Sequence record: MT366760.1
Reading direction: 5' to 3' (one strand)
DNA: 64,000 bases
Part shown: piece by piece, positions 3,001 through 64,000 of the stretch
How positions within the stretch are numbered: position 1 is the first letter of the stretch
Layout of the letters: each line of letters starts with the position of its first letter
Translations under genes and position numbers: made by a program
The notes under the pieces: model-generated
What the model was told of the DNA's origin: nothing
Seen by the model: the letters and a program-made list of their open reading frames with translations, nothing else
The model's database searches: none

Positions 3001-4236
3001 GTATTCTTCGATGTTGTCGAACTGTGGGATAAATACGACGTTACCATCTGGGTTAACAGCTAAGCGTTCTTCATTGATGCGTGGACGTTGAACCATTTCT
3101 TGCGTGATGCGACGAACGTTAGTAAGTGGGTTAACGATTTCGATTTCTTCAGTACCATTCATAGAGTGGTTGAAGATTGCCGTTGCCCATGCGTGAATAT
3201 CAACAGGGTTGATTTCTTTAGCTTTAGTCTGAACTAGGTACTCGGAAATTTCAGCGGGTATTTCAACCTGAACAAAAGCAGCAAAGTTCTGACGGGCGTT
3301 AGTAGCACTGATAATCGACTTATCAAGGAAGTTGTCAACGTATTCCTTCTTGATTTCATCAGAGATATGCGCCATAGCATTAATCTCTTCTACTGAAGTC
3401 GGGATTACGTTTTTACCATCAGGCATCGGGATTTCAACAAAACCGCTATAGTTGTAACCTTCAATGATACGAGCGGGTAATGCAGTAGCAGTGAAGCGGA
3501 TACCCTTGATAAATGACAAATACATATCAATGTCTTCATCATCGTAGTCAGTGAGGATACCGGCAGCGTCTACAAATCTGCTGTTAAGCAGTAGATCTTT
3601 GGAAACGGGTAGTGTGAAGTCGATAGGTTTAGAGAAGTCACCAAGTGCACCACCAGTTAGCTTAGACATCTGTTTGGCAAACGCCATACGCTGTTGCTTA
3701 AGGAGTGGCTCTTGGTCTAGATATGAAATACCCATCAGTCTAGGTCGCGAATTCGCGTAACCTAGCGATTGATACATACCGTCGATACCTTGAAGAATAG
3801 GTAAGTTAACTGAACAAGGAATATCCATGGTGAAACCACGACCTTGTCGGCTAATCATCAAGTTGTTTATCTTAGCACCAAGTTGTTCAAACTGAGTGTC
3901 CCACTTATCTTCGTTAGGAACTAGATTAACAGTATTAGCCTCTCCGAAGTGGTTAGACTTCATGTCCTTAATCAGTTGCTCGTGATTAGTGAAGTTCTTT
4001 TTGTAGTACTCAGCGATTACGTCTGGTGTGTTAGACAAGTTATCGTAGAGAGCTGATTGAGCTGCTACATAAGCTAGGTAAACGATGTCTGCGAAGTTGC
4101 TCGATACGTAATCGTAGAACTCGTCATAACCTTCTGGAGCGTCAATAGCTGAATCCGTAAAGGACGCGGCTGTTGCCAGTTCTCTTTCATCGTCTAGTGT
4201 GGCTTCTACTGCCTCAGCTAGTTTTTTCTTCTTCAT
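1..4236 (-). CDS. SNF2/SWI2-family (SF2) helicase/ATPase with ~690 aa unique N-terminal region; partial, runs off left edge
   Basis: Missing from the ORF track because it is incomplete. ATG at 4236 follows AAGGA. Manual translation of stretches gives PHQVRADAEL..VLHVDAGGGKT (motif I), YVSGDESHLLKN (DExH), GKVLIFT and TGHNFQFVNRLIRIENIWNPGDLEQAASRLNRP (helicase C lobe). The frame is still open at position 1. Confidence 0.85.
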   Translation of the reverse strand, partial: MKKKKLAEAVEATLDDERELATAASFTDSAIDAPEGYDEFYDYVSSNFADIVYLAYVAAQSALYDNLSNTPDVIAEYYKKNFTNHEQLIKDMKSNHFGEANTVNLVPNEDKWDTQFEQLGAKINNLMISRQGRGFTMDIPCSVNLPILQGIDGMYQSLGYANSRPRLMGISYLDQEPLLKQQRMAFAKQMSKLTGGALGDFSKPIDFTLPVSKDLLLNSRFVDAAGILTDYDDEDIDMYLSFIKGIRFTATALPARIIEGYNYSGFVEIPMPDGKNVIPTSVEEINAMAHISDEIKKEYVDNFLDKSIISATNARQNFAAFVQVEIPAEISEYLVQTKAKEINPVDIHAWATAIFNHSMNGTEEIEIVNPLTNVRRITQEMVQRPRINEERLAVNPDGNVVFIPQFDNIEEYYSLMQDALQDGDEEEWVMRSPFTLATNARSVGEPMPTEDAPRKKLAKKPANKLLYLDWALNKMSYTNTDGEVSILDLANYRKANAFGIRKILESKVEEDVNVKMFGYMRTVLQKSGKSLGEFADESEFDMLYFYENDEAKEQSVKWLRRYLDNSNFELFIERVSNNAREALGQNPPQQYIEALETLTSSDLLQLRDLAPNSNLVPLRCIGRAFDFINDKVLEDLDDVFESRSVVAGMMGIARITVCAKYTPRYAEVLEQDKSERSAYQASIDIDSNYKPQPIPFLFDGYAYLPHQVRADAELNRDPENGVLHVDAGGGKTHIILADVFRQMGRLFQDKKLGGKRRPLLMCPNNLIKNYVEDTIFMTQGKVNIIVVNTKTMNQYGEEKLAEMIEKAPVNTLVISEFDFMRNKPVNFAYGNTTVDMSLNCEFMRQFDWIYVSGDESHLLKNTGSKRSSFVGRLTADIDKRRIATGTFIHGMLQDAAGQFAQLDPTVFGSQKAFIEEYAAEVDRGKVVRWHDDAVPKVSEKVREHSNFIRISRKEWAALLPPATEEFHRLDLSRAQRDVYQSLLEKAIEEIKNNPQLMAKLKAGNEEDSAAIEMMLRPYLQRLEKFLAAPDTDELGETLLQGDDLVSPKAKKVIEILRNHESGYTDLSGNEHGAQSGKVLIFTSYIKSAESIYNALPPEIKEKTMLYYAADGVKATKRFERDNNYRYLIGTEMSLNTGHNFQFVNRLIRIENIWNPGDLEQAASRLNRPDPKQLFEKRTNIFFDWLICDGTIDVTKCGRLISKLLDTTRFNEENNPLYADIPNLELVSMTLNSILEDNEFGSADEPGSLWEYLEAYQDVARARKQDYANWATAYKGPTEPVPVPSAGMLPGSALMDVPYIDNMQLPYTQELGIIPLNDYLSDAGLEVENLDMKGMRVHTEYGDGIVTSGSKHRVNVELDIGGKVSVSKLATFIIESSDTRPVKERLAEILELGVVSIDPFDVDEEDVEETQDE

Positions 4237-6339: not shown

Positions 6340-8148
6340 TTACGCCTTTTTCCAGATAGCCGTGATGTCTACCCAGTTTTGTTCAACGCCATCGTCGTCT
6401 GGAGTCTTACGCTCTGTAACTCGTAATTCGCTAGCCACGTGATTACGAGATTGTAGCCAACTGCTTACCCAGTTCTTAGCTACACGTGATGGGGTTGACA
6501 TAAAGGAGAATTTAAGCGCGGGATATTTCTCAGCATCTACTTCACTATAAATGATTTCAGTTGGTAGACCACTTACGTAATCAGTACCGCGAGCCATAGC
6601 GTTCTGGAAGTCGGATGTTTCAAAACGTTGTAGCTCTTTAGTTAGTTTCTTACGTGAAGCTTGCTTGTCTTCCTTAGCGTCTAGTACGTACTCTTTAAAG
6701 TTGAAGTCGTCTGACAGACTTTCCATGAATTCGTAACGACGTTGGTATTGAGTCTTACCCATGATGATAAGTGACCAAGAACGTGCGCCAGTTTTGAATA
6801 CTGCATACGTACCATCGTCACCTGAATGTTTCATGAGGAAGTAAATATCACCACTATCATCAAAGTATTTACCAACTTCTTTGAACTTCTCGCGTTTTAA
6901 TTTCGGGAAATATTCGGAAATTGCTTCAGTTGGGTCAGATGATGCGCTTACACTTGCACCCAATACTGTTTTAGCTAGACCACCGAACTTCTTAGCCCAT
7001 TTCTTATAGATGGACTCTGCTTCGTCTTCGTCACCTAGTGTGATGTTGTCAGCACGTTGGTTTGGTACAGACTTAATAGGTGGCTTAGCTTTACGAAGTT
7101 CTTTAAGGAATGCAGTTAGACCCTTAGCAGACTTAAGGTCTTGCATTTCGTTAGCGATGTACACTGACTTAGTGACTGCTACAGACTTAGAGTTCCTGAT
7201 GAGTTCAGCAGCTTTCTTGTAGTCAACTTCAACGGCAGGTGAACCCTTCATGATGTATTTAACTTTGTCGCCTTCGAAGCAAATCTTTTGCTTACCACGG
7301 TCAAGGCTAACAACACCGTATACACCACCACGTTCATCTGGTGATTTAGTAGCTTTACCCGATTCATTATCAACCGAGAAGCCACCCTTCTTGTTGTCGT
7401 CTACTTTCGGTTCAGGGATTGGATTCATTACGTCTGGTGTTTCAATCCACTTCATAAGGTTTTGTGGTTTGATAGCTTTATCACGGAGCTTTTCACCTTT
7501 ACCCGCTTGGATGAAACCAACTAGGACATTGGTAGAAACCATATCCGTCTTGTCACCTTTGTCTAGTGCAATGGTCATCATCTTAGTTGCTTTGCTATAG
7601 GTCTTAACAGTAGCAGCCATTAGCTTCTTACCGCGACGTACAATAATACGTTTACCCTTAGCAAGCTTAGCAGGGTTACAAACTAATTCACCCTTAAGCA
7701 ATTTAGTCATTTGTTCTTTAGGGAGTTCAGTGACTTTGCCTACTTTGGATTTACCACCGTCTTTCTTACCCTTCTCTTTCATATCACCAACTGGTCGCTT
7801 GCCTTTGCCAATTGCAACTTCAAGCCATTTGTTGATTTCATTTTCAGGGATTGGGCTAACACGTTTACGTTTGATCTTAGCTTTACCAACTAAACCAACT
7901 AGTGAACGGGTTGCCTTATATGACATCTTGATTCCATCATCGAATACGATGAAGACAAGGTTGTCTTTCTTGTTAAGACGTGTTACCGACGCAGGATAAT
8001 ACTCGGGTTCCTTTGTAGTGTTATCATTGATAATAACACGGTCACCCCGTTTTAAATCGTCGATTAGCCCCGCTTCTTCAATGAATGCAGCAATCTCAAT
8101 AGGCTTATCATTGTGTGTAGCAGAGGCAACTGTGACTTGTTTAATCAT
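6340..8148 (-). CDS. Lys-rich protein with repeated Tudor/KOW/SH3-like beta-barrels; putative internal virion protein
   Basis: KRGDRVIINDNTTKEPEYYPASVTRL..VFIVFDDG and KGKRIIVRRGKKLMAATV.. repeats; N-terminal MIKQVTVAS motif. Confidence 0.6.
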   Translation of the reverse strand: MIKQVTVASATHNDKPIEIAAFIEEAGLIDDLKRGDRVIINDNTTKEPEYYPASVTRLNKKDNLVFIVFDDGIKMSYKATRSLVGLVGKAKIKRKRVSPIPENEINKWLEVAIGKGKRPVGDMKEKGKKDGGKSKVGKVTELPKEQMTKLLKGELVCNPAKLAKGKRIIVRRGKKLMAATVKTYSKATKMMTIALDKGDKTDMVSTNVLVGFIQAGKGEKLRDKAIKPQNLMKWIETPDVMNPIPEPKVDDNKKGGFSVDNESGKATKSPDERGGVYGVVSLDRGKQKICFEGDKVKYIMKGSPAVEVDYKKAAELIRNSKSVAVTKSVYIANEMQDLKSAKGLTAFLKELRKAKPPIKSVPNQRADNITLGDEDEAESIYKKWAKKFGGLAKTVLGASVSASSDPTEAISEYFPKLKREKFKEVGKYFDDSGDIYFLMKHSGDDGTYAVFKTGARSWSLIIMGKTQYQRRYEFMESLSDDFNFKEYVLDAKEDKQASRKKLTKELQRFETSDFQNAMARGTDYVSGLPTEIIYSEVDAEKYPALKFSFMSTPSRVAKNWVSSWLQSRNHVASELRVTERKTPDDDGVEQNWVDITAIWKKA

Positions 8149-19277: not shown

Positions 19278-20342
19278 TTATAGAATGTCGTGTACGTTTT
19301 CTTGTTCATGTACAAGTCTGGTGTTAAGTTCCCAGTTGATTACGGTCTTAGCCGAATCATAGACGGGTGTCATTTCAGTGACTTGCCATATTCTGTTGTA
19401 TTTGTTTTCTTTTACGATACTCCACCGAGGAAGGCTAGGTACATCAGCACCAATGTGCATTTCAGTCTCGCCGTTATCACCAAGTAGATTCTTGGAGAAA
19501 GTTGAGGTTGCGAACTGTGGAAAATCAATGTACGTAACACTATTATTTACAATATAGTTAGCCTCGAAGTGGGTGAACTTACGTGAGGTTGTAATTCGGA
19601 AATTACGAGGAACTCCCGTAGCTAAATCACTAAGGTTAGTTACTGTCACCCAAGAAGTTCCGTCAAACACAAACATCTGATACTCAGCATAAGGTATAGT
19701 GTCGTGATTGTTTCTTAAACGGAACTTAGATATCGTAGCACCAAAAGGTACAACACAAGTAAAGTCAACTGTTGAGGTCTCACCGGATTTAGGAGCGAAA
19801 GCATGTGGAGATACAGTTGAATCCACGGTGAAACCACTACCCATATGCGGTGAAGGTGTGGCTAGCACAAGTCGGTAACCATTAAATAAGTCGTAACCAC
19901 CAACCCAACCGGAGGAATAACACACGGAGCAAGACACAGCACCAAACTCCAAGAAGTCGAAATCCATGTCGTCATCTATCCCATCACCGTCTAAGTCAGA
20001 TTCTACAATGAACCCGTCACTGGTGTTCTCATCACGGTCGAAGTCATCAAAGCTGAACGTTTGACGGTTCGTAACGCCCTGAGTACCTTTGAGTACGGTT
20101 TGGATAGAGTCTTCTGTTAAGTTACCTGATGTATCTAGTAGTTGGGTTTCACCAGAACACGTGCACTCTAAGCCACCAGACTTCCTAATATAAATAGAAG
20201 CGGTTATTTGTCCGGCTTGGAGTGTGTTTAACACCTTTTGCTGTTGTAGTTCGCCATAGAATGGTGTACCCTGAACGGTAGGGTTTACAGCCCTGCGGTT
20301 CATAACATGTAAAGATGTTTTATTCTTCTGAAGTTTAGGCAT
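19278..20342 (-). CDS. probable neck/head-completion protein with Zn-binding motif
   Basis: CTC...CSVCYSSGWVGGY motif; beta-barrel C-terminus (WQVTEM..NWELNTRLV); context. Confidence 0.45.
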   Translation of the reverse strand: MPKLQKNKTSLHVMNRRAVNPTVQGTPFYGELQQQKVLNTLQAGQITASIYIRKSGGLECTCSGETQLLDTSGNLTEDSIQTVLKGTQGVTNRQTFSFDDFDRDENTSDGFIVESDLDGDGIDDDMDFDFLEFGAVSCSVCYSSGWVGGYDLFNGYRLVLATPSPHMGSGFTVDSTVSPHAFAPKSGETSTVDFTCVVPFGATISKFRLRNNHDTIPYAEYQMFVFDGTSWVTVTNLSDLATGVPRNFRITTSRKFTHFEANYIVNNSVTYIDFPQFATSTFSKNLLGDNGETEMHIGADVPSLPRWSIVKENKYNRIWQVTEMTPVYDSAKTVINWELNTRLVHEQENVHDIL

Positions 20343-20368
20343 AAATTACCCCATTTTTAGAGAAAAAA

Positions 20369-20408
20369 CTGTAAATAACTACTATAACCAAATTAGTTTA
20401 GTTTACAG
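20369..20408. promoter_or_regulatory. divergent pair of CTGTAAA motifs (+ at 20369-20375, - at 20402-20408)
   Basis: One copy on each strand, located exactly between divergently transcribed units. Confidence 0.55.
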
Positions 20409-20441
20409 ATATTTACTGAAACGATTAATAAGGCGTTAATA

Positions 20442-20510
20442 ATGGCTGATACAGGTATATATCGGGTATTATCATTCGACCCTGGTAAAATAAATGGACT
20501 ATCACGGTAA
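20442..20510 (+). pseudogene. 22-codon remnant of the original resolvase 5' end (MADTGIYRVLSFDPGKINGLSR*)
   Basis: 14 codons encode exactly GIYRVLSFDPGKIN, as at 21344-21385; AAGG RBS upstream. Confidence 0.85.
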
Positions 20511-21339
20511 GGGAAATATCAAACGCACAACCGAAGGTTACAACATAGAACTTGCTGATAAGGGTAAGACGATGCGTGCTATGGAAGAGTACGTAAATGT
20601 GGACACACCGATATTACATGAGTGCGTTAGGTGTGGTGATAGCCGAGTAACTAAACCCTATTACATATTGACAGCATCTAAAAATGGTTGTAGGTCATGT
20701 AGTAAGTGGGGGAGCATTACAGATTATAATGAAAGGCTACGTAGTGATAAAAGGAAGCTACGTACTTTTGAACAACCTAAGGGTTGTAATGTTAAAATTG
20801 GACATCTTTGTTTAGTGTGTCACCACGTGTGGGAAGCAACACCGAATAGGGTCTTGACGGGTAAGACTGGCTGTCCAGAATGTGCAAAAGCATTACAGCA
20901 GGGTGTGAGGCGGAACTTCAAAGAATACGTATTAGACGGTAGGAGTGTGGTAGTCGAAGGTTATGAACCCCAAGCTATAGACTATCTAATTAACGTTCTA
21001 GGGGTTAAACCTAAACAAATCAGTGTGGCTAGTGAAAAAGTTGTACCCATCATCAAGTATAAGGAGAAGGGAAAGCAACGTCAACATTTCCCCGATATTT
21101 ATATACCTAAGTTGAACAGAATTGTTGAAGTTAAAGGTTCGTATACATTCTGCGGTAATAAGACGTTATTCACTAATATATGTCGTAAACGGAAAGCAGC
21201 TAAGAAATCAGGATATGAGTATTATGTATTCATCATGACCAAGGGTGGTACTAGAATTATGCTGCCTAAAGGTTGGTGGAAAATGAAGTATACTGAAGTA
21301 GCTAACCTTGTAAATAAAGGGGAGTGGGAAAGTGAGTAA
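20494..21339 (+). mobile_element. free-standing homing-type endonuclease (Zn-ribbon repeats + PD-(D/E)xK nuclease)
   Basis: CVRC..GCRSC and CLVC..WEATPNRV..GCPEC repeats; HFPDIYIPKLNRIVEVKG; flanked by the duplicated resolvase 5' end. Confidence 0.8.
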
Positions 21340-22006
21340 TGATGGTATATACCGAGTGCTGTCTTTCGATCCTGGAAAGATAAATTTTGCCTTCAGCTAC
21401 AATGAGCACAAGGTTAAGAATGGTAAGTTAATTACCCGTGTATTAGAAACTGGTATCATGAAGGTTCCCCTCGACAAATTAGGTGACGCTGATTTTTCTA
21501 AGCAATGTTTTAAGTTCTCTCAAGAGTTTGAAGGAATGCTTAAGAGGTTTGAGCGATTGTACGGTCGTGTTAACTTAATTACCCTAGAAAGGTATATGGG
21601 TCGCGGCACAATGGTCGGAACAACTATTGAGGTATGTGGTATCATGATTGGTATTATGACCAACGTTGTTCAGTTCCTTGGGTACTCAGCAGATATACAA
21701 CTCGTAACATCCGCGATATGGAAGAATGCATTCAACCGTATCAATACAAAAGAATACGAAAGCAGTGGTAAGAAGAAAACTGCCCAATGGTTAAACTTGT
21801 CCTATAATTTATGTAGGACATCAGCGCATGAACTTGACGCAACCCTCATAGGTTTATATGGAGCTTACAAATCCTTCGGGATTAAGCCGTACACGACTCA
21901 GGCTTCCGAGTATGAGCGTGACAGGATGTTAGGTATGGTTGAGGACGCATCAATGCTGCCACTTGAAAACAGGAGGCGCAAGCGCACGCATTTCATTGAG
22001 GACTAG
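21332..22006 (+). CDS. RuvC-like Holliday junction resolvase
   Basis: VLSFDPGKINFA, ITLERY, WKNAF, HELDATLIG acidic catalytic pattern. Confidence 0.75.
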   Translation: MSNDGIYRVLSFDPGKINFAFSYNEHKVKNGKLITRVLETGIMKVPLDKLGDADFSKQCFKFSQEFEGMLKRFERLYGRVNLITLERYMGRGTMVGTTIEVCGIMIGIMTNVVQFLGYSADIQLVTSAIWKNAFNRINTKEYESSGKKKTAQWLNLSYNLCRTSAHELDATLIGLYGAYKSFGIKPYTTQASEYERDRMLGMVEDASMLPLENRRRKRTHFIED

Positions 22007-22008
22007 GT

Positions 22009-22452
22009 ATGTGTAAGTTGGTCGAGAATGCTACGCAACTCGATATTGAAAATTCACTACGCGATGGTATAACGCAGAAGCAAGCGCAGTACCGACGTAT
22101 CGAAGGTGAAAAGAAAATTAAGTCTATCCTTGTGTTAGATGATTACATCGAATGGCTAGAATCTAGACCATACAGACGTATTGATGAAAACCTCATAGAT
22201 ACTGTAAATTATCACGTTATGGAAAGTACATTAAACAGGTATCCGTTTGACGGTGGTCACTTTAATGTAAACGTGCATACTTTACTAAGACTACTCAACA
22301 AAAAGAACTTAAAAAGATACTGCAAGTTTAAAGGTATCGAAACAACTTTCAATTCCCTTTTAAATGTGACGGATAAAGAACTGCGAGTAATGCAGTCGTC
22401 ACGTACAATTTTGTTAACCCTCTCAATATTCATGGAGAAGCAACATGGCTAA
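22009..22452 (+). CDS. hypothetical protein
   Basis: Coupled ORF with GAGGA RBS. Confidence 0.65.
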   Translation: MCKLVENATQLDIENSLRDGITQKQAQYRRIEGEKKIKSILVLDDYIEWLESRPYRRIDENLIDTVNYHVMESTLNRYPFDGGHFNVNVHTLLRLLNKKNLKRYCKFKGIETTFNSLLNVTDKELRVMQSSRTILLTLSIFMEKQHG

Positions 22453-23056
22453 GACCCTAATGGTTCAAGATATCACACCTGAAACTCGCAACGTGTTCGT
22501 TACTAACAACACTGAAGGTAGAGAACGAGGACCTATATTTTTCACTGTTCATCAACTAAAGGGCAATGGTGTTGACAACGTGGTTGTACCTAACACTTGG
22601 ATGGCAGTTGACCTAACGTCACAAGTTCACCCACAGCAGCTTCTGGAGTCTAACACATTCCGTCGTCTAGTTAACAGTAACCTAGTTACTATCTTGACTG
22701 ACGAAGAAGCTGACAAAATCAATAGCCGTGAAGGTGCGGAATCAGAAATCCAACGTCTACGTAAAGAAGAGTTCAACATTGAAGCTACGCTAAGCGGAAA
22801 CGGTCTGGGTTCACGTGGTAGTGTTGAAGCTAAGCCAACTGTAGAGCAAACCAACATTGGTCAACCATCAATGAAGGTTGAAGTACTTATGGCTGAAGCA
22901 GAGAAGACTGACGAAGTTTCTCTAATTAACGCACTACGCAACATCAAGTCTGAACTAGTTGAACCAGACTACAAATTCGTACGTAAAGTTGCTAAGGGTC
23001 TAGGTTACAAATCACTTACTCGTTGGTGTAACAACCAACTTAAAAAGATTAAGTAG
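22445..23056 (+). CDS. hypothetical protein (highly expressed codon bias)
   Basis: GGAG RBS; ends before a bidirectional terminator. Confidence 0.7.
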   Translation: MAKTLMVQDITPETRNVFVTNNTEGRERGPIFFTVHQLKGNGVDNVVVPNTWMAVDLTSQVHPQQLLESNTFRRLVNSNLVTILTDEEADKINSREGAESEIQRLRKEEFNIEATLSGNGLGSRGSVEAKPTVEQTNIGQPSMKVEVLMAEAEKTDEVSLINALRNIKSELVEPDYKFVRKVAKGLGYKSLTRWCNNQLKKIK

Positions 23057-23077: not shown

Positions 23078-23111
23078 AAAAAGCGCAGCCCGTTTGGGTT
23101 TGCGCTTTTTT
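23078..23111. terminator. bidirectional intrinsic terminator
   Basis: AAAAAGCGCA-GCCCGTTTGGGTT-TGCGCTTTTT between convergent genes. Confidence 0.85.
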
Positions 23112-45171: not shown

Positions 45172-45645
45172 ATGAAATTAACAGCAGAAGAAGCTATGTT
45201 CTTACGAACGCATATAGTTAAACCAGAAGGTAAGACAATGCGTGATGTTGCGTCTGCCATATGTGAAATATCAATTGAACCCGTAAACAGTTATCCATCA
45301 GAATATCGTGATGCAGTCAGTGGATTGCTAGAGAAGTTCAAAAGTAACTTTGAATCACTGAGGGGAGAAACATGTGCGAGTTTTACTGACGTCGAAGACT
45401 ATAAGTTCGATATATTCCAAGGTCGCCACGATGGATCTTCAGCTATCTGTATGTTGGTATGTCAACAATGTACTATTTCACCGAGTGGTTTCACATACAC
45501 ATATGGGATACAATGTGAGCGATATACGAAACCTAAACAGGATCCAATCTTACAGATAAATACTAAAGTGTCTATTCAAAGTCATACACCAGTGATAGAT
45601 ACTTTCCGTTTGCCAAATCTAAGGCAAGAAGTTATGTTTTTCTAG
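45172..45645 (+). CDS. hypothetical protein
   Basis: AGGAGG RBS; coupled to the helicase stop. Confidence 0.65.
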   Translation: MKLTAEEAMFLRTHIVKPEGKTMRDVASAICEISIEPVNSYPSEYRDAVSGLLEKFKSNFESLRGETCASFTDVEDYKFDIFQGRHDGSSAICMLVCQQCTISPSGFTYTYGIQCERYTKPKQDPILQINTKVSIQSHTPVIDTFRLPNLRQEVMFF

Positions 45646-45647
45646 AT

Positions 45648-45675
45648 AAAAGCCATCCTTAGGGGTGGCTTTTTT
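45648..45675 (+). terminator. intrinsic terminator
   Basis: AAAAGCCATCC-TTAG-GGGTGGCTTTTTT. Confidence 0.75.
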
Positions 45676-45730
45676 ATCTCTAACCTAATTTAAATTGCAA
45701 TATTGCACAGAACAAAATGAGGACAGAGAT

Positions 45731-46015
45731 ATGCCAATGATGGATGTTCCACAAATGAACAAGAAGCTTAAGGAGCTTAAGAAGATTGCTAAGAACGCTA
45801 CGGGTGTCCGTAAAGATCCGGCAATTAAGAAAGTTAAGTCGATGGAAGCCAAAATCAAGAAGGCTCGTTCGATGAAAGCTAAAGAAGGAGCGAAGGGTCG
45901 CAAGAAGATGGCTAAAGCAGGTGTCAGTTGCGACCGCAAGCGCGTAGAGGCTGCACTCAAGGGTTGGAAGACTCGCCGCAAACTCCACGGAAAATCAGGT
46001 TGTAAAAATAAGTAA
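45731..46015 (+). CDS. small Lys/Ala-rich basic protein (histone H1-like composition)
   Basis: GAGGA RBS before the ATG at 45731; monocistronic between two terminators. Confidence 0.7.
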   Translation: MPMMDVPQMNKKLKELKKIAKNATGVRKDPAIKKVKSMEAKIKKARSMKAKEGAKGRKKMAKAGVSCDRKRVEAALKGWKTRRKLHGKSGCKNK

Positions 46016-46028
46016 CAGATCACAAATT

Positions 46029-46051
46029 ACCGCCTTTCGGGGCGGTTTTTT
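46029..46051 (+). terminator. intrinsic terminator
   Basis: ACCGCC stem, TTCG loop, GGCGGT, T6. Confidence 0.85.
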
Positions 46052-46765
46052 GTTCTCTAAAATCGGAAAATCAAAAATCGTCTAAATAGAGGTTTAGAGC
46101 GTCTAGACCTCAAAAGTTTGATAGCAAAAAACCCTGATAGTGTTGTGCCCGTATAGGGCAAAAATGCCCTCTCAAAATCGCGTTTACAGGTGTCAAATCG
46201 TCCCACAGATGCCTCTACAGAACACCCCGTTCACCCAATTTTTCGCCAAACACCCCAAAATCATCGAGGCACAATTTTTTAGACATGATATATCACTTAT
46301 CAGTGAATATAACCGAAATGTCTTCTATCTATCTACTGATCTCCACCTCTCTGGTCTGACCTCCGACTAAGTCTGGTCTACCTATAAGCATGGAGTAACC
46401 AAATATCATATATCATTAAACTACCCACTTAGACATAGATATAGATACCATATTTATAAATAGGAGGTGGTCTAGACGATTTAGAGATTTGCACAAAATT
46501 GAGTTTTTTAACGTTTTTTAACGTTTTTTATAACCCCAGATATCATCCCTTATTTCCACACTAATTTGATATAATTCAAATATGCTTGATTATGTAAATA
46601 CGTTATGAAGTTAATGGGGACAGGAGCCGCAACTCTTGGGATAACGATAGTGGATTGATGACCCGCGAACACTGGGTAGTTTTTCATAGCTAGCTATTCA
46701 GCACTCAAATCCCTAACCTGTTAACTTCCATCACCTATTCAACATAATTTATTAGGACTTTAGCT
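46052..46765. other. long non-coding region (candidate origin/packaging or regulatory locus)
   Basis: No credible ORF; A/T tracts, palindromes, tandem repeat. Confidence 0.55.
46503..46530 (+). repeat. 10-bp tandem repeat (GTTTTTTAAC x ~2.8)
   Basis: gttttttaac gttttttaac gtttttta. Confidence 0.85.
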
Positions 46766-48622
46766 ATGAAAAGCAAAAAGACAACCAGTAAGGCTTTTAT
46801 CGAAGCTATTGAAAAGCTCACCAAATACCCAGAACACCCAGTCACACTCCTCCACGATGTTGTAACAGCTTACCTAACAGACTTAGGTGTCCCAGAAAAG
46901 AAACTGGCTTTATGTGAGAAACACATGTGCCACCTCTTCGGTCACCATATCGCAAGTCGCCATGATCTTGCTCGGTCTAAAAAAGGCAGCCACAACATCA
47001 ACCCTTGGATTCCACTACCCTACACTTTGCTCAATAGCGAATTCTATTCTTTGTACAAAGAAAAGTTCAAAGATGGTAAATCTATTTGGCAACACCTTAT
47101 GGAATCCAAAGACAACCCACTCTTTGTAATAGACACCTACTACTACCAATCAACTAAAGCTAAGCGCGGCAAATGCCGTAGATACAAATTGAATGAACAG
47201 TTACTGAATTTGTTTTATACTCTATGTGTCAAAACATTTACTGACCTAGAAAAGAAAGAGCCTAAAATGAATTTTTTATCAGGTGCCTATGGGAGGACGT
47301 TTTGTATTGCAACTGGTATTGACATCGCCTCTGAATTGAAACGCTTGCAATTACACGTAAAATCAAAAGTAGGTGCATCCGGTCATCGCGTACTCTACAA
47401 AGATCGCGGACGTAGTATCCGAACATCCGACTACCTTAAGGATAAGACTCGTGTTCAATTCCCTAGGTTGCAAACACAAGCTATCAATAATGCATGTGCT
47501 TCCTTCCCCATCGACATGGTTGAAATATTTGATTACCTAGACGAAGAGGGTGCCAAACTAGTTGATGGTCGTATGCCAGTAGGTGGTAAGGACTACTGCA
47601 AATTCATGAACAACTTCTGGGCTGTTCAAAGGATGTGTGAATGTAAATACATCGCACAATCCCCTCGACGTGTTGAATTTTATCCTAGCTATGACACACG
47701 AGCAACTTTTGGTAGCCGAACGTTCGGCAATCCTACTCAGAACATTTCAAGTAAGTTGAAACAACGTGCAGCAGGTCCGTACCTGAAATCAGAAGATAAT
47801 CCTTATGGTTGGCATATTATCAACTACGACATCGAAAGTTCTCAGATGTATTTTCTTAGCGTTATATTGAAAGCGTATAACATTGATTGCCCTTGGTTAA
47901 CTGACTTCCTTGCTAATAGTAGTAAGAAAGATCTAGCACGTAGTCTAGGTATAAACGTTAAGACTCTTAAAATTATAATGTACGCACTGGTATTCGGAGC
48001 ACCCCTGAACAAAAATTTCAATATAAAGGTGCTAAAACATAAACGACACATCTTAGTAGATGAAATGTATAGTGGTCTAGTTGACCATGGTTACCTACAA
48101 AGTGATGATTTCGAAATAGAGAATGTCCTAGGTGGGGCTATTATAGAAGCTATCTACTCCTGTGTTGGTTCTAAATCCAAAACTAAAGAAGTCTATGAAA
48201 ATGTTTATACCGAGTTCATTGGTCTTTATGAAGCACTAAATGAATTAGACTCCAGACTATACGAAGATTCCTACAAACCAAAACGAACAAAAGGAACGGG
48301 TCGTCATTGGAAAAATTCAGTTGGCTCCATAATATCTGAAGCAGACCTCCGTGGTGATGCACGTAAGCGAAAAGCATCCTTGCGTGCCCACATACTTCAG
48401 GGTATGGAAGCAGCATGGGTTTACTATATCATTAATAAACTATCTGAATTCTACGAGCACGCAGTTGTCTGTGGCATTGAACATGACGGGTTCATCTCAC
48501 GTCGTGTGGTTACACCAGAATGCATAGAATATGCTAATAACGAAGTGAACAAATTAACTTCTCTAACCAGATTGAAAAATGTGCGGGTAAAAGCAAAATT
48601 AATCGAGAAACCTTTTGCATAA
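46766..48622 (+). CDS. family-A DNA polymerase-fold protein without exonuclease domains, N-terminal HTH-like region
   Basis: SRTFGNPTQNIS, YDIESSQ (motif A), KTLKIIMYALVFG (motif B), ILQGMEAA, EHDG (motif C). Confidence 0.55.
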   Translation: MKSKKTTSKAFIEAIEKLTKYPEHPVTLLHDVVTAYLTDLGVPEKKLALCEKHMCHLFGHHIASRHDLARSKKGSHNINPWIPLPYTLLNSEFYSLYKEKFKDGKSIWQHLMESKDNPLFVIDTYYYQSTKAKRGKCRRYKLNEQLLNLFYTLCVKTFTDLEKKEPKMNFLSGAYGRTFCIATGIDIASELKRLQLHVKSKVGASGHRVLYKDRGRSIRTSDYLKDKTRVQFPRLQTQAINNACASFPIDMVEIFDYLDEEGAKLVDGRMPVGGKDYCKFMNNFWAVQRMCECKYIAQSPRRVEFYPSYDTRATFGSRTFGNPTQNISSKLKQRAAGPYLKSEDNPYGWHIINYDIESSQMYFLSVILKAYNIDCPWLTDFLANSSKKDLARSLGINVKTLKIIMYALVFGAPLNKNFNIKVLKHKRHILVDEMYSGLVDHGYLQSDDFEIENVLGGAIIEAIYSCVGSKSKTKEVYENVYTEFIGLYEALNELDSRLYEDSYKPKRTKGTGRHWKNSVGSIISEADLRGDARKRKASLRAHILQGMEAAWVYYIINKLSEFYEHAVVCGIEHDGFISRRVVTPECIEYANNEVNKLTSLTRLKNVRVKAKLIEKPFA

Positions 48623-50062: not shown

Positions 50063-50095
50063 AAAAAGCGCAAACCCAAACGGGCTGCGCTTTTT
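50063..50095. terminator. bidirectional intrinsic terminator
   Basis: AAAAAGCGCA-AACCCAAACGGGC-TGCGCTTTTT. Confidence 0.85.
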
Positions 50096-50277
50096 AGTCC
50101 CTAATTACAGTGTTCCAAATATTCGTGCGAACTCCTGCATATTAACACCTGCTTGCTTCAGCTCTTCATCAAGCCGTGTAGCATTCGCTTGCTCAATACT
50201 TCTTCTCTCATCCGAAGCAGTTGCCGCTCTCTTTAATTTTCTACGGGCAATAGCAGCCGTATTAACTGTTCTTATAC

Positions 50278-58689: not shown

Positions 58690-58725
58690 AAAAGCCCCTT
58701 TAGCTTCGGTTATTGGGGCTTTTTT
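58690..58725 (+). terminator. intrinsic terminator
   Basis: AAAAGCCCC/GGGGCTTTT plus T-tract. Confidence 0.8.
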
Positions 58726-58792
58726 ATCTTTATCAAAACGTAAAATTAAACTAATTCAATGGTAGCTTAATAAACAAAATACAGGGGCTCCT

Positions 58793-59320
58793 ATGGCTAA
58801 CGATAACTGTTTCCTTGAATCAATTGACCAATTAAGGTTGGTTGAATGGAATACTGACCACCTCTGGGATATCAGGTTACCTAACATTGATGCAAATAAG
58901 TTAGGTGAGTTACCCTCTTACTTTCAGAACTGGCTTCCAGTAATAGATATTGAAGAAAATCTAGCTACGATGAACACACAGAAGTTCGACTTGTACAATT
59001 CGAATACTTCTATACCCATCGGAACTGGTGAATTTGATATGACCCTCATCTTCGCTGACGACCATGAGAATAAGCTGTTAACTTACTTTAAGAACTGGAT
59101 AAACCGCGACATACTTGGAAGCAATAACCAAGGTAGGGTAACGCCCGTCTTTGATGCTGCACGCCAGATATGGGTACGCAAGTTAACCAGACAAAAAATA
59201 AATGTAGAAACTAGACGATACTGGGTGATACCCGAAGGGAGCGTAGACTTCTCAGGTAAATCACAATCCGAACTATCACAGTATCAGGTAAAACTAGTTG
59301 TAGTTGGAATCCCCGAATAA
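58793..59320 (+). CDS. tail-tube-like protein (tube initiator/baseplate)
   Basis: MTLIFADD..LLTYFKNW tube-fold pattern. Confidence 0.55.
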   Translation: MANDNCFLESIDQLRLVEWNTDHLWDIRLPNIDANKLGELPSYFQNWLPVIDIEENLATMNTQKFDLYNSNTSIPIGTGEFDMTLIFADDHENKLLTYFKNWINRDILGSNNQGRVTPVFDAARQIWVRKLTRQKINVETRRYWVIPEGSVDFSGKSQSELSQYQVKLVVVGIPE

Positions 59321-59332
59321 GGATTAACCATT

Positions 59333-60253
59333 ATGTTTTTAAGAAAAGATGAACCCTCAAAAGAAAATACCGAAAAGTTCACTGTTGATCTACCTAGTGA
59401 ACCAACAGACGAAATCGTAGAAACACCCAAAGCTGAGAACAAAGAAAATCCTAAGAAAGGTACATGGGTAGAAATAAATGGTCTACCCTCACGTAACTTA
59501 GCGTACCCAGAAGGGTCAATCGTTCGCTACCGTCCCTACAATTTCGACGAAATTGAAGATATCTCAGACTCCGAATTGAGTTTCGAAGACCACTACGAAA
59601 TGGTATTGAACGGGATTGAAACCGTAGGTTTTGATAAACGCGATTTAACCTTAGGTGATTTTCTATTCATCATGTTAAACCGCAAGATAACAACACTCGG
59701 CACAGATGAATTCGTCGTACACTTCTCTTATAATGGTGAAGCACACAAGCACATCATGAGAGTATTCGATGTGAAGTATGATGACATTGAAGCCCCTGAA
59801 CTACCTATCATTATTACAACGGGTGATGGTACGGAAGTTGAATTCATGCCGATAACCGTAGGTCAATACTTAGACTACATGGCGGATAAAGATAAACTTT
59901 CTAAAACTAAAGAAAGCAGAGCGCTGCTAGCTTGTGGTGTAACAAACTTAGATTTCTGGGATGCTTATAAACTCATTACAGAATCAATGGGTATGGATGC
60001 TAAGTACTTTGCTACTGTGGACAGACTACTTTACCACTCTATTCAGGACTTCCGCCTACCAGTAAAAGAATACGTTGATAATCCCAAGTATTCCGAAGAC
60101 CTAACTGATGAACAAAAAGAATTTATTCCTAAACAACTTGAGCAAATTAAGGAGTGGGTTAACATAGAGGTTAATGATGACTCTATGTTGCTCATGCCCT
60201 TTCGTCGCGAGGGAAGTGCTACAGGAGATGGTATTAGATTTGGCAAAGGCTAA
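59333..60253 (+). CDS. tail assembly chaperone / baseplate hub assembly protein (T4 gp26-like)
   Basis: LPSRNLAY, YRPY, LTLGDFLFIML.RKI; directly upstream of the tape measure. Confidence 0.55.
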   Translation: MFLRKDEPSKENTEKFTVDLPSEPTDEIVETPKAENKENPKKGTWVEINGLPSRNLAYPEGSIVRYRPYNFDEIEDISDSELSFEDHYEMVLNGIETVGFDKRDLTLGDFLFIMLNRKITTLGTDEFVVHFSYNGEAHKHIMRVFDVKYDDIEAPELPIIITTGDGTEVEFMPITVGQYLDYMADKDKLSKTKESRALLACGVTNLDFWDAYKLITESMGMDAKYFATVDRLLYHSIQDFRLPVKEYVDNPKYSEDLTDEQKEFIPKQLEQIKEWVNIEVNDDSMLLMPFRREGSATGDGIRFGKG

Positions 60254-60407
60254 TATCGGTGACATAACTGTGATACGTACTCTGTGTTTTAAGAAATGTA
60301 GAGAACTACAACAACGTATTATTGCACACGCCCAAAAAGACTTAGAAGAATCTAATCAGATGCTTCAAGCTCTATTTAAGTTGTTAGGTAAAATACCGAG
60401 AAGCTAA
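60228..60407 (+). CDS. small +1-frame ORF after the chaperone (separate gene or frameshift extension)
   Basis: Overlaps the 3' end of the chaperone; ends 13 nt before the tape measure ATG. Confidence 0.55.
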   Translation: MVLDLAKANIGDITVIRTLCFKKCRELQQRIIAHAQKDLEESNQMLQALFKLLGKIPRS

Positions 60408-60420
60408 GGGGTAATCAATA

Positions 60421-62721
60421 ATGGCATTCCGACCACAAGACGACCCTAGTATCATGGAGGATACTAAGGGTAAAGCTGTTGGTTCCTTTGCGTCTAGACT
60501 TGGCGCACGGGCGAAAGCAGCTAAGGACTTTGAGCCTATACGTAACTTGAATACATTAGGTGACAAAATAGCTAGCTCTCTGCCTACTGTATTACAAGGC
60601 TCAAAGTTACACGACCAATTAACCACCGTTCTTAGTTCCATCGACGTATCTAGCGCATTACTAGATACTGACAAAACCCTGAAAGATTTGCAAAAACGCA
60701 TGGACATGGCTGTAAAGAAAAATGATGTAGCCTTGCAGCAAAAAATACAGGAACAAATGGACGCGGTAGAACGCATATCTAATTTCCGTGACGGTGAAAA
60801 CAGAGAACTACTGGACAAAGTTCTTAACCGTGAGAAGTTGGATAAAGACCAAGCTTCAGAACTATTGGATACAGTTAAAGCTGTAACAGCCGACATAACT
60901 CAGGTATCCGATATCCGTTCAGTAAGTTCTTTGGACATGCTACGTCAATCTTCAAATGTGGTTGGTGACTCACGACTATCCTCGTCACACCGACGCCAAG
61001 TAGCTGATGACATGTATAGCTCTTTGCAGCAACAGGACTCACTGAAGCAAACACAAGAGCTAATGGACATTGGTAACATTCTGAAGTCTAGCGCAAAACT
61101 AACGGAAGATCAATTCCAACGTATCACGGGTGCACTGCAATCCTTAGAAGATACTGAGAAGTCAAAGCAAAAAGTTAACGAAAAAGTTCGTGAAACTCAG
61201 ATGCTTCTTAAGACAGCTAAGACAACAGAATCAAAAGACTACGCCATTCAGGAATTAAATAAAACACTTGAAAACTTCCCTGAATACATTGGTCAAGTAC
61301 AAGAGCTTCAACAATCTTATTCCGACGACGGTAAGATGAATGCTCACACCATGCGTAAAGTTACCAAGATTCTGGATAAACTTAACGCTGATACCACTGA
61401 AACAAAAACACTCTACACTCTTAATGAACTTAATGAAAAGTTCGATGCATCTATACTTAACAATGAAGAACTGAGTGAAGCCCTATCCAAGAACTCATTA
61501 AGTGAAAAGTTCATGGAGAACCCCGAGCTTATCTCTACTGGTCAAGGGTTAGCTAGTGGTGCCATATCTATGGTTCTACAATCTATGGGACTCGGTAACT
61601 TAGACGCAATGCTAGGTCTGAGTGACATGATAACTTCTGGTGCGGGTTCACTGCTATCAGTCGGTAGTGGTGCAATGCTTGGTAAGATGGCGGGTAAGGG
61701 TGGCATGTTGGGTTCAGCCGCTAAGATGCTCGGTCACTCCGATGATGACTCAGCTATGTCCTATAGGGAAGGCTACCGTGATGCAAACCAAGACACTCGT
61801 CGTACTCGTGACAAAAGAATGAGTCGCACTGGTCGTCGTGGTAAGGGTAAATTGGGTAGACTTGCTAGTAAGGTTGGTGGTAAATTAGGTTTTATAACCG
61901 CAGGTATGGATGGTGCTGCTGCCCTAGCTGATACTGCTGACCCACTTAGTTCACTACCCCTAAGCACAGGTGGCTCAGCTCCTATGACCACCGCTGCTAA
62001 AGGTTCATCCAAACTAGGTAAGCTTGGTAAGATGGCGGGTAAGCTAGGTGGTAAAGCACTTAAAGTACTCGGACCTTTGGGTATGCTCGCCTCAGTTGGT
62101 ATGGATGCTTTTTCTGGATGGGACGACGCTTCAGCTATCTCCGGTAAAGAACAAAAGGACTTATCATTCGGTGACAAAGCTCAAAGTTCATTAGCCTCCA
62201 TTGCTTCCGGTCTTACTTTCGGTATGGTAGACCCCGAAACCATGTTTAAAGGGATGGACTTCTTTACCAACAATTCTATGTTTGGAACAGAAGACAAACC
62301 CGCTACCATGAAGGAAGCAAACTTAGAAACTTCTAATGTGGTAATCAAAGCTGACTCACTAGAACCCATCGAACCCATCGCTGCTGTTGACCAAGGAATG
62401 ATGACTCAATCAATGAGGACACCTAAAGCTAAAGCAACGATGACTTCGATAGAAACTCCTAGTACAGCTCCACCGATGTCCGCCAATCAAATTGAAACTG
62501 AATCTAGGTCAGTACAACGACAGGCTAGCATGGCAGCAACTACCGCTCAGGTTACCGCTTCACAACAAGCGGGTAAAGAAGCAGCCCAAGCAACGAAAGA
62601 AACACCACCTGTTATCATGCAGGGTGGTAAGAAAGACGATGGTGGCGCAGGACTGGTACGTGCTAAACCACAAGTTGACGACATTTCAATTGCGGTTATG
62701 AATTCCGCCAATTATACATAG
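60421..62721 (+). CDS. tape measure-like protein
   Basis: Long helical N-terminus, Gly/Ala-rich hydrophobic segments (GKLGGKALKVLGPLGMLASVG), position. Confidence 0.7.
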   Translation: MAFRPQDDPSIMEDTKGKAVGSFASRLGARAKAAKDFEPIRNLNTLGDKIASSLPTVLQGSKLHDQLTTVLSSIDVSSALLDTDKTLKDLQKRMDMAVKKNDVALQQKIQEQMDAVERISNFRDGENRELLDKVLNREKLDKDQASELLDTVKAVTADITQVSDIRSVSSLDMLRQSSNVVGDSRLSSSHRRQVADDMYSSLQQQDSLKQTQELMDIGNILKSSAKLTEDQFQRITGALQSLEDTEKSKQKVNEKVRETQMLLKTAKTTESKDYAIQELNKTLENFPEYIGQVQELQQSYSDDGKMNAHTMRKVTKILDKLNADTTETKTLYTLNELNEKFDASILNNEELSEALSKNSLSEKFMENPELISTGQGLASGAISMVLQSMGLGNLDAMLGLSDMITSGAGSLLSVGSGAMLGKMAGKGGMLGSAAKMLGHSDDDSAMSYREGYRDANQDTRRTRDKRMSRTGRRGKGKLGRLASKVGGKLGFITAGMDGAAALADTADPLSSLPLSTGGSAPMTTAAKGSSKLGKLGKMAGKLGGKALKVLGPLGMLASVGMDAFSGWDDASAISGKEQKDLSFGDKAQSSLASIASGLTFGMVDPETMFKGMDFFTNNSMFGTEDKPATMKEANLETSNVVIKADSLEPIEPIAAVDQGMMTQSMRTPKAKATMTSIETPSTAPPMSANQIETESRSVQRQASMAATTAQVTASQQAGKEAAQATKETPPVIMQGGKKDDGGAGLVRAKPQVDDISIAVMNSANYT

Positions 62722-62730
62722 GGTAACATT

Positions 62731-63366
62731 ATGGCTGCATTCGACTTAGAATCCTTAAAGGAAGATCCCAACAAACAGGTGATACTAACAAACGGTAGTC
62801 TAACCGTAACCGGATATCTCGAACAGGATTTTGAGGTAGGGGGATCTGCTGTGTACGACAATCCTTTCGAACAATTTTTGGATGATAAATCAGCTAAGCT
62901 CCAACAGGCTGCTGCTATTGGTAATCAGTTTGGTATGACAGACATGAGTTCGTTTCAACTTAAATCTAGGTTGAACACAATATCATTGTGGACGGGTTCA
63001 GAAAGACCAACATTTAATATACCTTTCACACTTGTACGTAAGAGAGCAACTGACCAACCAGTAACAGCCGTTACAAGTCAGCTAACATCCTATCTATATC
63101 CAATAGCCGAAAGCGGATTAGAAGGTTTACTTTCCGCCCCAGGTGGTTACGCTACTGCCGAAGGTGGTAGTGCAACTGGTACGTGGACACTGAAGATTGG
63201 GCGTTGGTTCCGAGCAACAGGGTTAATACTACTTAACGCTAGTTTCACCCATAGCAAAGCTGTCACTACAGATGACTCCCCTCTTTACGCAACGGGAACT
63301 GTTTCAATGCAACCCTACCGTATGATTAGTGCATCTGAATTCCGTAACTACTTCCTAATCAAATAA
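62731..63366 (+). CDS. baseplate tube-like protein
   Basis: LWTGSERPTFNIPF, TLKIGRWF, ATGTVSMQPY. Confidence 0.55.
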   Translation: MAAFDLESLKEDPNKQVILTNGSLTVTGYLEQDFEVGGSAVYDNPFEQFLDDKSAKLQQAAAIGNQFGMTDMSSFQLKSRLNTISLWTGSERPTFNIPFTLVRKRATDQPVTAVTSQLTSYLYPIAESGLEGLLSAPGGYATAEGGSATGTWTLKIGRWFRATGLILLNASFTHSKAVTTDDSPLYATGTVSMQPYRMISASEFRNYFLIK

Positions 63367-63378
63367 AGGGGTTATACT

Positions 63379-63762
63379 ATGGCTTTTGTAATCAATGCTT
63401 CACTTAAAACTGAAGAACGATATGCCTTTGAAAAGTTCATGGAGAAAATAACTTCATCGGATAACTCACAGACGTATGACCCTTTTACATCACTGTTTCT
63501 AGCTAGACTACTTAAACTAGAACCTAACGGTGAAAGGTACGTAGGCGCTGTAGCTGAACAACGACCAGACCTATTATCCTACGAGATTTATAGGGACAAC
63601 CAATATTGGTCATTGCTACTCTACTACAACAACATATCAGACTTCAGGACACTGACAAGTGAATTACGGATAAGACATTTCGCCCTGAACGATTTAGAAA
63701 ATTTGTACTTCCGACTTCAAGCACTTAAGAAGAGTGATGTACCTCAATCAGTAAGGTTGTAA
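63379..63762 (+). CDS. baseplate wedge gp53/LysM-like protein
   Basis: RPDLLSYEIY..QYWSLLLYYNNI. Confidence 0.7.
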   Translation: MAFVINASLKTEERYAFEKFMEKITSSDNSQTYDPFTSLFLARLLKLEPNGERYVGAVAEQRPDLLSYEIYRDNQYWSLLLYYNNISDFRTLTSELRIRHFALNDLENLYFRLQALKKSDVPQSVRL

Positions 63763-63763
63763 C

Positions 63764-64000
63764 ATGATAGGAACTGAAGGTCAATGGTTGATGACTTTCT
63801 CAATTGGTGAAACACTAACTGATTTCATTAAAGGTGAAGACTTAACAGAATTCACACTGATTGAGAACGCGGGTGGTGGTCTACCAACATACGAATTAGT
63901 ATTTCAAACAAGTAACCCACTAGTTTTAGGTTACTTGAATGAGGGGCAAATAATCACAGTGTCCTATGGTAAGAATGCTAATGACTTGGTAGACTCATCA
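63764..64000 (+). CDS. probable baseplate hub protein, partial
   Basis: ATG at 63764 after AAGG; open to the window end (MIGTEGQWLMTFSIG..IENAGGGLPTYEL); position after the gp53-like gene. Confidence 0.55.
   Translation, partial: MIGTEGQWLMTFSIGETLTDFIKGEDLTEFTLIENAGGGLPTYELVFQTSNPLVLGYLNEGQIITVSYGKNANDLVDSS

Follow-up and report, generated by a model that had tools for sequence, protein, structure and literature searches.

A putative homing endonuclease gene between two synonymous copies of the start of a predicted RuvC-like resolvase gene in Vibrio phage vB_VcorM_GR7B

Vibrio phage vB_VcorM_GR7B (hereafter GR7B; MT366760.1, 207,758 bp) carries a gene for a predicted Holliday-junction resolvase of the RuvC-like kind, and within the first codons of this gene we find a gene for a putative zinc-ribbon nuclease, flanked on both sides by a copy of the resolvase gene start. 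We analyzed the locus in a stretch of 64,000 nt of the record, referred to below as the window (window position + 62,000 gives the MT366760.1 record position), in which all oriented features lie on the plus strand unless stated otherwise. Comparisons were made with GR11A, a relative of GR7B from the same host and hatchery (comparison sequence L002), and with L003, a 66-kb Logan contig that represents a second relative with an uninterrupted resolvase gene. Among these three, an 890-bp insert is specific to GR7B; there, the native resolvase start is kept upstream as a 22-codon open reading frame (ORF) behind its native intergenic element, and a second, differently spelled start opens the complete resolvase gene downstream. 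The explanation that we favour, and consider reasonably likely, is that a free-standing homing endonuclease arrived at this place together with the 5′ end of a donor allele, probably through one-sided illegitimate break repair.

The duplicated gene start was delimited by reading the sequence, by alignment and by a repeat search, which pairs the upstream copy (20454-20495) with the downstream, functional copy (21344-21385) as a direct repeat of 42 nt with 79% identity, 890 nt apart. Both copies translate to the same 14 residues, GIYRVLSFDPGKIN, and they differ at 9 of 42 bases, with every difference silent: eight lie at third codon positions and one at the first position of a leucine codon (TTA versus CTG). 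Each copy begins exactly four codons past a start codon, the ATG at 20442 for the upstream copy and the GTG at 21332 for the downstream one, and the repeat unit therefore corresponds to the first 18 codons of a gene. Over codons 2-4 the two starts encode different amino acids (A-D-T upstream, S-N-D downstream), and the start codon differs as well; the downstream tail opens with M-S, as do the resolvases of GR11A and L003. In a six-frame translation of the whole window, GIYRVLSFDPGKIN is the only repeated peptide of at least nine residues, apart from the peptides of two identical DNA terminators and one unrelated 9-mer (NTTKEPEYY).

The divergence between the two copies is confined to silent positions and has run to its limit there. 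Of 200,000 simulated sets, each of nine random substitutions placed in either copy, not one was wholly silent. The silent divergence (pS, the proportion of differences per silent site) is 0.87 on ~10 silent sites, which amounts to saturation, and the number of identical codons, 6 of 14, sits on the 5.9 ± 1.8 expected from two independent draws from the codon usage of the phage; the likeness of the two DNA sequences is thus no greater than their shared peptide forces. When the restored gene is set against the leftover copy, the nine silent differences all fall inside the 36 nt that lie 5′ of the junction.

Alignment with relatives lacking the nuclease, the check that had been proposed for an empty allele, recovered such alleles in both comparison genomes. 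At the residues flanking the GR7B junction, the gene reads contiguously as ...SFDPGKYNFAY... in GR11A and as ...SFDPGKNNFAY... in L003, and in each of them it stands directly behind the homologous divergent neighbour and intergenic region, with the nuclease absent from the site. No homologue of the nuclease in GR11A was present among the phage-record matches. The resolvase of GR11A (GR11A_00032) is 72% identical to that of GR7B over a full-length alignment, and the L003 resolvase is 45% identical. When the window was compared by tblastx with 78 kb of GR11A, the two were colinear across window positions 1-44,927 (45 kb of synteny). Within this range just one segment of at least 300 bp, 20496-21285, found no match in GR11A, and it corresponds to the body of the nuclease ORF.

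The segment that GR7B holds in addition to the uninterrupted allele spans 890 bp (20496-21385), as delimited by the end of the upstream-copy homology at 20495 and by tblastx, and consists of the nuclease gene, short of the first two letters of its ATG, together with the replacement resolvase 5′ end. Ahead of it lies the leftover ORF (20442-20510; ORF list and family alignment), which comprises resolvase codons 1-18, four out-of-gene codons and a TAA. This ORF aligns to residues 1-18 of the resolvase family and is preceded by an AAGG Shine-Dalgarno sequence at 20430-20433, at the native distance from the conserved intergenic element. The latter is an imperfect palindrome in the divergent intergenic region (20369-20410), identified by an inverted-repeat search and by comparison with GR11A and L003; it reads CTGTAAATAACTA ... 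TAGTTTAGTTTACAG, and its half-site is unique in the window. The palindrome is almost identical in GR11A (L002 about 3942-3982), where the flanking proteins are only 58-72% identical to their counterparts, and it is partly conserved in L003. We read it as marking the native upstream context of the resolvase gene, and a role as bidirectional promoter or as operator of the resolvase operon seems possible.

The nuclease gene itself (20494-21339, 281 aa; ORF list, Pfam and PHROG) opens with an ATG (20494-20496) that takes its A and T from the AAT codon 18 (20493-20495) of the leftover ORF, and a TAA stands in the nuclease frame directly 5′ of this ATG. No Shine-Dalgarno sequence precedes this start, and the stop of the leftover ORF comes 12 nt after it. 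At the other end, the nuclease gene, with its stop codon at 21337-21339, shares 8 nt with the resolvase start region. The Shine-Dalgarno sequence of the resolvase, AGGGGAG (21318-21324), can be read within the last nuclease codons, 7 nt from the GTG at 21332, from which the resolvase gene extends to 22006 (224 aa; PHROG, alignment and structure model). Much of this arrangement had been described in the original prediction, which named two stretches encoding the same 14 residues with nine silent differences in 42 bases, a nuclease ATG overlapping the last AAT of the upstream copy, and a downstream copy with its own GTG and ribosome-binding site. Coordinates and letters agree with that description on every one of these points, to which the ATG four codons ahead of the upstream copy can be added; the downstream copy is a complete replacement start.

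The interrupted gene was identified by sequence family and by structure. PHROG 18317 ('Holliday junction resolvase') matches its product at 5.6e-30, and a structure model (predicted template modelling score, pTM, 0.82) matches Thermus thermophilus RuvC (4ld0_B) with an E-value of 7.9e-7 and a template modelling (TM) score of 0.70. Further matches of the model include E. coli RuvC (1hjr), Ydc2 (1kcf), MOC1 and the RuvC of lactococcal phage 67; a PDB sequence search with the resolvase profile returned nothing useful. On the strength of the model, the product is predicted to have an RNase H-like RuvC fold, and together with the family match this makes it a predicted RuvC-like Holliday-junction resolvase. 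D13, E86, H166 and D169 are invariant in 11 sequences, and so are S11, P14, G15 and N18; D13 is presumably the equivalent of RuvC Asp7, an assignment that we make by position in the fold rather than by residue-level superposition. The repeat (residues 5-18) forms strand β1 (model strand 7-14) and the turn that follows, and it includes the predicted catalytic Asp13. The junction falls right after the invariant N18, five codons beyond Asp13 and in a part of the gene that ranks among its most conserved, which bears out the earlier claim that the nuclease gene had been inserted in the active-site codons of a resolvase.

These observations also bear on gene annotation. The protein read from the GTG at 21332 aligns from residue 1, over its full length, with uninterrupted relatives. 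GenBank entry GR7B_00097 starts at an internal Met (window 21458-22006) and loses the first 42 residues, and with them the first three strands, among them the Asp13 strand. The public annotation of the GR7B resolvase is hereby corrected, with the start placed at GTG 21332 and not at the internal Met.

Pfam places the inserted gene product in DUF7487 (2.5e-17; 64 bits against a cut-off of 27) and detects in it a DUF4379 treble-clef zinc finger (5.7e-6; 26.9 against a cut-off of 24.5). Matches to CapR and DUF723 stayed below the Pfam cut-off, there was no Pfam Vsr match, and the protein matches PHROG endonuclease families. Two CxxC...CxxC zinc ribbons are present (Cys44/47/66/69 and Cys106/109/127/130); in phage homing endonucleases, zinc-finger arrays of the CapR/DUF723 kind are reported to act as DNA-binding modules (PMC10448857). 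In the C-terminal DUF7487 domain, the alignment reveals E158, P200-D201 and E212-V-K214 as conserved in DUF7487-bearing relatives, and this E...PD...EVK motif suggests a nuclease domain of the PD-(D/E)XK type. The AlphaFold model of the protein has a predicted local distance difference test score (pLDDT) of 82.8. Foldseek matches to it are weak, with a best E-value of 0.025 and none at E ≤ 0.001, and the list consists mostly of PD-(D/E)XK enzymes (RecE, cap-snatching endonucleases, Cas4, Vsr and PvuRts1I); a PDB sequence search with the nuclease yielded nothing useful.

Searching a 50%-identity protein library at E ≤ 1e-3, we recovered 5,622 representatives of the DUF7487 nuclease family. The family is modular, with one to ten zinc-finger stretches and lengths of up to about 1,000 residues, and to our knowledge none of its members has been characterized. 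Annotated phage relatives appear as MutH/Vsr/HJR-like or Hef-like homing endonucleases, and those of PaBG and fHe-Yen9-02 are free-standing, antisense and situated between genes. At one further locus (L014:1691-5197; JGI Ga0485831_0000092), a DUF7487 protein (1.1e-35) is encoded between an ORF with the N-half of a Hint domain at its end and an ORF that starts with an intein C-motif, both intein matches being below Pfam cut-offs; judged by these motifs and their order, the locus is a putative split-intein 'fractured gene' arrangement with a DUF7487 nuclease in the gap. A flanking peptide repeat was found at none of the seven other loci with nuclease relatives. The duplication therefore belongs to the GR7B event rather than to a cassette design common to the family.

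Further alleles were sought in phage records, IMG/VR, JGI metagenomes, GTDB genomes and a collection of 5.8 billion proteins, and this combined search returned no relative closer than GR11A. Scans of IMG/VR with the resolvase or the nuclease as single proteins yielded no relatives, and scans of IMG/VR and the JGI metagenomes with a three-sequence alignment recovered only distant uninterrupted resolvase genes (26-35% identity). Degenerate DNA patterns for the exact GIYRVLSFDPGKIN peptide had no match in IMG/VR or GTDB genomes. The empty site reconstructed from 20478-20495 and 21386-21394 contains a palindrome that pairs at 7 of 9 positions (GGTAAAATA/AATTTTGCC) and is centred 3 nt 5′ of the junction; in the occupied copy (context of window 21368-21385) the pairing falls to 6 of 9. 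Palindromes as good as this one occur at 0.14% of window positions, for a post hoc chance of about 2% of meeting one within ±8 nt. A dimeric nuclease might recognize such a site, and in this respect the palindrome is a weak post hoc hint.

Taken at the level of sequence, the two copies look like the 5′ ends of two functional, diverged alleles that were joined recently. We favour this over a selected respelling of a single sequence, because codons 2-4 and the start codon differ and the downstream tail opens with M-S like its relatives; an imported 5′ end is further favoured because the downstream copy has its own ribosome-binding site, overlapped by the nuclease 3′ end. 'Recoded', as the downstream start was called in the original prediction, presupposes a process; an imported diverged allele would account for the data at least as well.

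The following course of events can be proposed. The donor phage would have carried the nuclease gene directly upstream of its own resolvase allele, with the nuclease stop overlapping the start of that allele. In the GR7B ancestor, the nuclease would have cut the nuclease-free allele near codon 18, and the break would have been repaired from the donor, through normal homology on the 3′ side and through an illegitimate, microhomology-sized join at ...AAT/ATG on the 5′ side. Such a repair would leave the first 18 codons of the recipient upstream and install the first 18 codons of the donor before the gene body. The nine silent differences would then represent the ordinary allelic divergence of two functional genes, and they would alter the nuclease site in the restored gene and so provide self-immunity. 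Deletion of the insert by recombination between the repeats would be unlikely, since no stretch of identity between them exceeds 8 nt, too little for ready recombination.

With regard to expression, a single transcript would probably run from the native promoter. Ribosomes finishing the leftover ORF just past the nuclease ATG would re-initiate on the nuclease, and the resolvase would be translated from its own strong Shine-Dalgarno sequence within the nuclease 3′ end. Translational coupling of the nuclease through the 22-codon ORF is plausible because the nuclease start is without a Shine-Dalgarno sequence and the leftover ORF stops so shortly downstream of it. A more far-reaching interpretation takes the carriage of a gene end of its own to be a third way, beside introns and inteins, for a homing endonuclease to occupy the most conserved and least mutable codons of an essential gene, with the cassette moving as a unit, the spare start restoring the gene, the respelling serving both as immunity and as a block to excision, and the leftover start acting as a leader ORF that supplies the nuclease with ribosomes. 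We offer this, as one joint claim, tentatively, as something possible rather than probable.

Several observations weigh against the arrival of the nuclease with a donor's gene start, or against parts of that account. Neither a donor allele nor a second occupied allele was found in the phage, metagenome, genome and protein collections listed above, and the nearest relative of the nuclease in the 50%-identity protein library is just 40-48% identical, with none above 48%. G5, I6 and I17 are identical in both copies though they vary between GR7B and GR11A, and 14 identical residues out of 14 at saturated silent divergence is slightly above expectation. Codon usage favours the upstream copy as the native one only weakly (log-likelihood difference 2.75). 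The G+C content at third codon positions (GC3) reveals no boundary of a conversion tract within the resolvase gene, its high level being common to the GR11A copy. Finally, the hairpin predicted around the nuclease start is no stabler than shuffled sequence (z = 0.34).

Some of these points would suit an adapted mobile cassette, the strong form of the original prediction, in which the silent changes arose or are kept under selection by the nuclease, for immunity and against repeat loss, rather than being inherited from a donor, an alternative that we consider rather unlikely. It would account for all changes being silent and occupying 9 of about 10 available silent sites, and the three residues that the copies share and that differ in GR11A come more easily from a single lineage. 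The downstream copy moreover has codons that are rare in the phage (GGA 0.09, CTG 0.07, GTG 0.12), and the 7-of-9 palindrome of the empty site retains only 6 of 9 pairs in the occupied copy. Nine changes, however, are far more than escape from a nuclease should require, and there is no intermediate series. The amino-acid changes in codons 2-4 and the different start codon are as allelic divergence predicts, and the seven other loci with nuclease relatives have no flanking duplication. Less probable still is an inert scar, in which the nuclease no longer homes, or cuts elsewhere, or has been co-opted for another role, the duplication being a by-product with no role in immunity or expression. 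The single occupied allele, with no spread in evidence, and the lack of a Shine-Dalgarno sequence at the nuclease start are in keeping with such a scar, and free-standing phage nucleases often cut away from their own gene (PMC2988022). Against it stand the intact nuclease ORF, with all motif residues, both zinc ribbons and a confident fold, and the placement of the junction in a very conserved stretch of the kind that homing endonucleases typically target. The leftover ORF, too, has suffered no amino-acid change, frameshift or start loss, and from this undamaged state it follows that the insertion event was recent.

Two further alternatives are extremely improbable. Direct repeats flanking an inserted gene could have arisen by duplication in place, for example as a long target-site duplication, followed by neutral divergence; we reject this because drift did not reach nine silent changes out of nine in any of the simulations described above, and because a drifting leftover, free of selection, would hold many replacement changes and holds none in 14 codons. 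As a rule, a nuclease gene within conserved coding sequence belongs to an intron or an intein, and on that background the upstream copy might be the real gene start, connected to the remainder by a self-splicing intron, an intein or translational bypass. The insertion had been predicted to be intron-less, and a search of 20200-21600 against Rfam indeed gave no match at E ≤ 1; with the insert taken up by the nuclease ORF, no space remains for a ribozyme core. An intein is rejected as well, the nuclease frame differing from that of the upstream copy, with stops between them, and an in-frame Hint domain being absent. A second complete start with its Shine-Dalgarno sequence would in any case make splicing or bypass needless, and splicing would duplicate residues 5-18.

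Downstream of the resolvase gene, two genes of 147 aa and 203 aa (22009-23056) belong to the same transcription unit and are syntenic in GR11A and L003. A GC-rich hairpin with A/T runs on either side (23078-23110), recognized from its sequence as a putative bidirectional intrinsic terminator, would close the unit. An identical 33-nt hairpin stands at 50064-50096, in opposite orientation and 27 kb off, and the two look like copies of one bidirectional terminator. A scan for sigma-70 promoters and terminators across 20200-22100 stayed at background level. Elsewhere in the window, positions 45180-46768 and 58699-64000 have no tblastx match in positions 12000-90000 of the GR11A record; no nuclease gene is recognizable in these GR7B-specific stretches, and their ORFs have no Pfam match except for a sub-threshold EcoEI_R_C match for 59333-60253; these are variable regions. 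The 9-residue peptide NTTKEPEYY is encoded twice on the minus strand, at window positions 8022 and 13567. In tblastx, window 13367-13621 matches two places in GR11A, which together with this peptide suggests a domain common to two neighbouring large genes.

The nearest described counterpart comes from fungal mitochondria, where mobile open reading frames (mORFs) make gene hybrids, as in atp6 of Allomyces macrogynus and in atp6, atp9, cox2 and nad3 of Glomus sp. (PMC3630166). There, an mORF enters with a foreign 3′ gene end, which becomes expressed, and the native end remains downstream (PMC3630166); in Endoconidiophora, partial duplications of atp6 and cob lie beside endonuclease ORFs (PMC6279837). 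Like these elements, the GR7B locus has an endonuclease ORF inside a conserved gene and a duplicated gene end, of which one copy is joined to the gene and the other is left over, and the two ends are similar in protein and diverged in DNA. The fungal mORFs carry a 3′ end and a LAGLIDADG or GIY-YIG nuclease, often fused in frame, whereas GR7B presents a 5′ end and a zinc-ribbon DUF7487 nuclease in a phage. Since it is the 5′ end that is replaced in GR7B, a start codon and a ribosome-binding site have to come with the insert as well. The fungal ends are foreign; the end inserted in GR7B, at 18 codons, is too short for a tree, and no donor of it was found.

Among phages, the T4-type Seg and Mob proteins are free-standing homing endonucleases that practise intronless homing (PMC2988022). 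The GR7B nuclease gene resembles theirs in having no intron or intein and in being present in one phage and absent from the same place in a relative. As with Seg and Mob, it would be expected to cut a nuclease-free allele nearby and to be copied along with its flanks, with the carrier immune through sequence differences. Seg and Mob genes lie between genes and encode GIY-YIG or HNH enzymes; the GR7B nuclease gene, in contrast, lies inside coding sequence and is rendered harmless by the duplicated start. Genes in pieces, namely mobE in nrdA of Aeh1, mobA in gene 39/60 of T4 and seg in gene 43 of phage 25 (PMC2988022), likewise have a free-standing nuclease in a functionally critical region of an essential gene, with no intron. 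Their products, however, are two polypeptides that reassemble, whereas GR7B has a complete ORF downstream and, upstream of it, a leftover of 22 codons. Dassa et al. (2009) described fractured genes, in which Vsr-like homing endonucleases lie between split-intein halves; these nucleases combine a restriction-enzyme topology with a separate DNA-binding part and occur mainly in phage DNA-metabolism genes (PMC2677866). GR7B is linked to them by the DUF7487 relative of its nuclease at the fractured-gene-like locus described above (L014), and it is set apart by the absence of an intein, by the canonical PD...EVK motif and by the lack of a Pfam Vsr match. For the repair step, one-sided illegitimate double-strand-break repair at microhomologies is reported from T4 td intron homing (Parker et al. 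1999, as related in PMC2988022). As related there, that work used engineered substrates in the laboratory, and it would offer a route that needs homology on a single side, the opposite end being joined at a microhomology. The literature searched yielded no example from a phage in which a duplicated gene start brackets a nuclease gene.

By analogy, then, a principle that fungal mitochondrial genes display at their 3′ ends appears here extended to the 5′ end of a phage gene. As we interpret it, the GR7B locus would be a natural example of a selfish nuclease that, carried by neither an intron nor an intein, occupies the catalytic codons of an essential phage gene and leaves that gene unsplit. It also offers a sharp prediction for the target of the nuclease, which would be the uninterrupted resolvase sequence around codons 15-20. 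For phage genomics more broadly, a nuclease gene bracketed by short repeats at the peptide level can point to a recent homing event and to the limits of the DNA that was imported.

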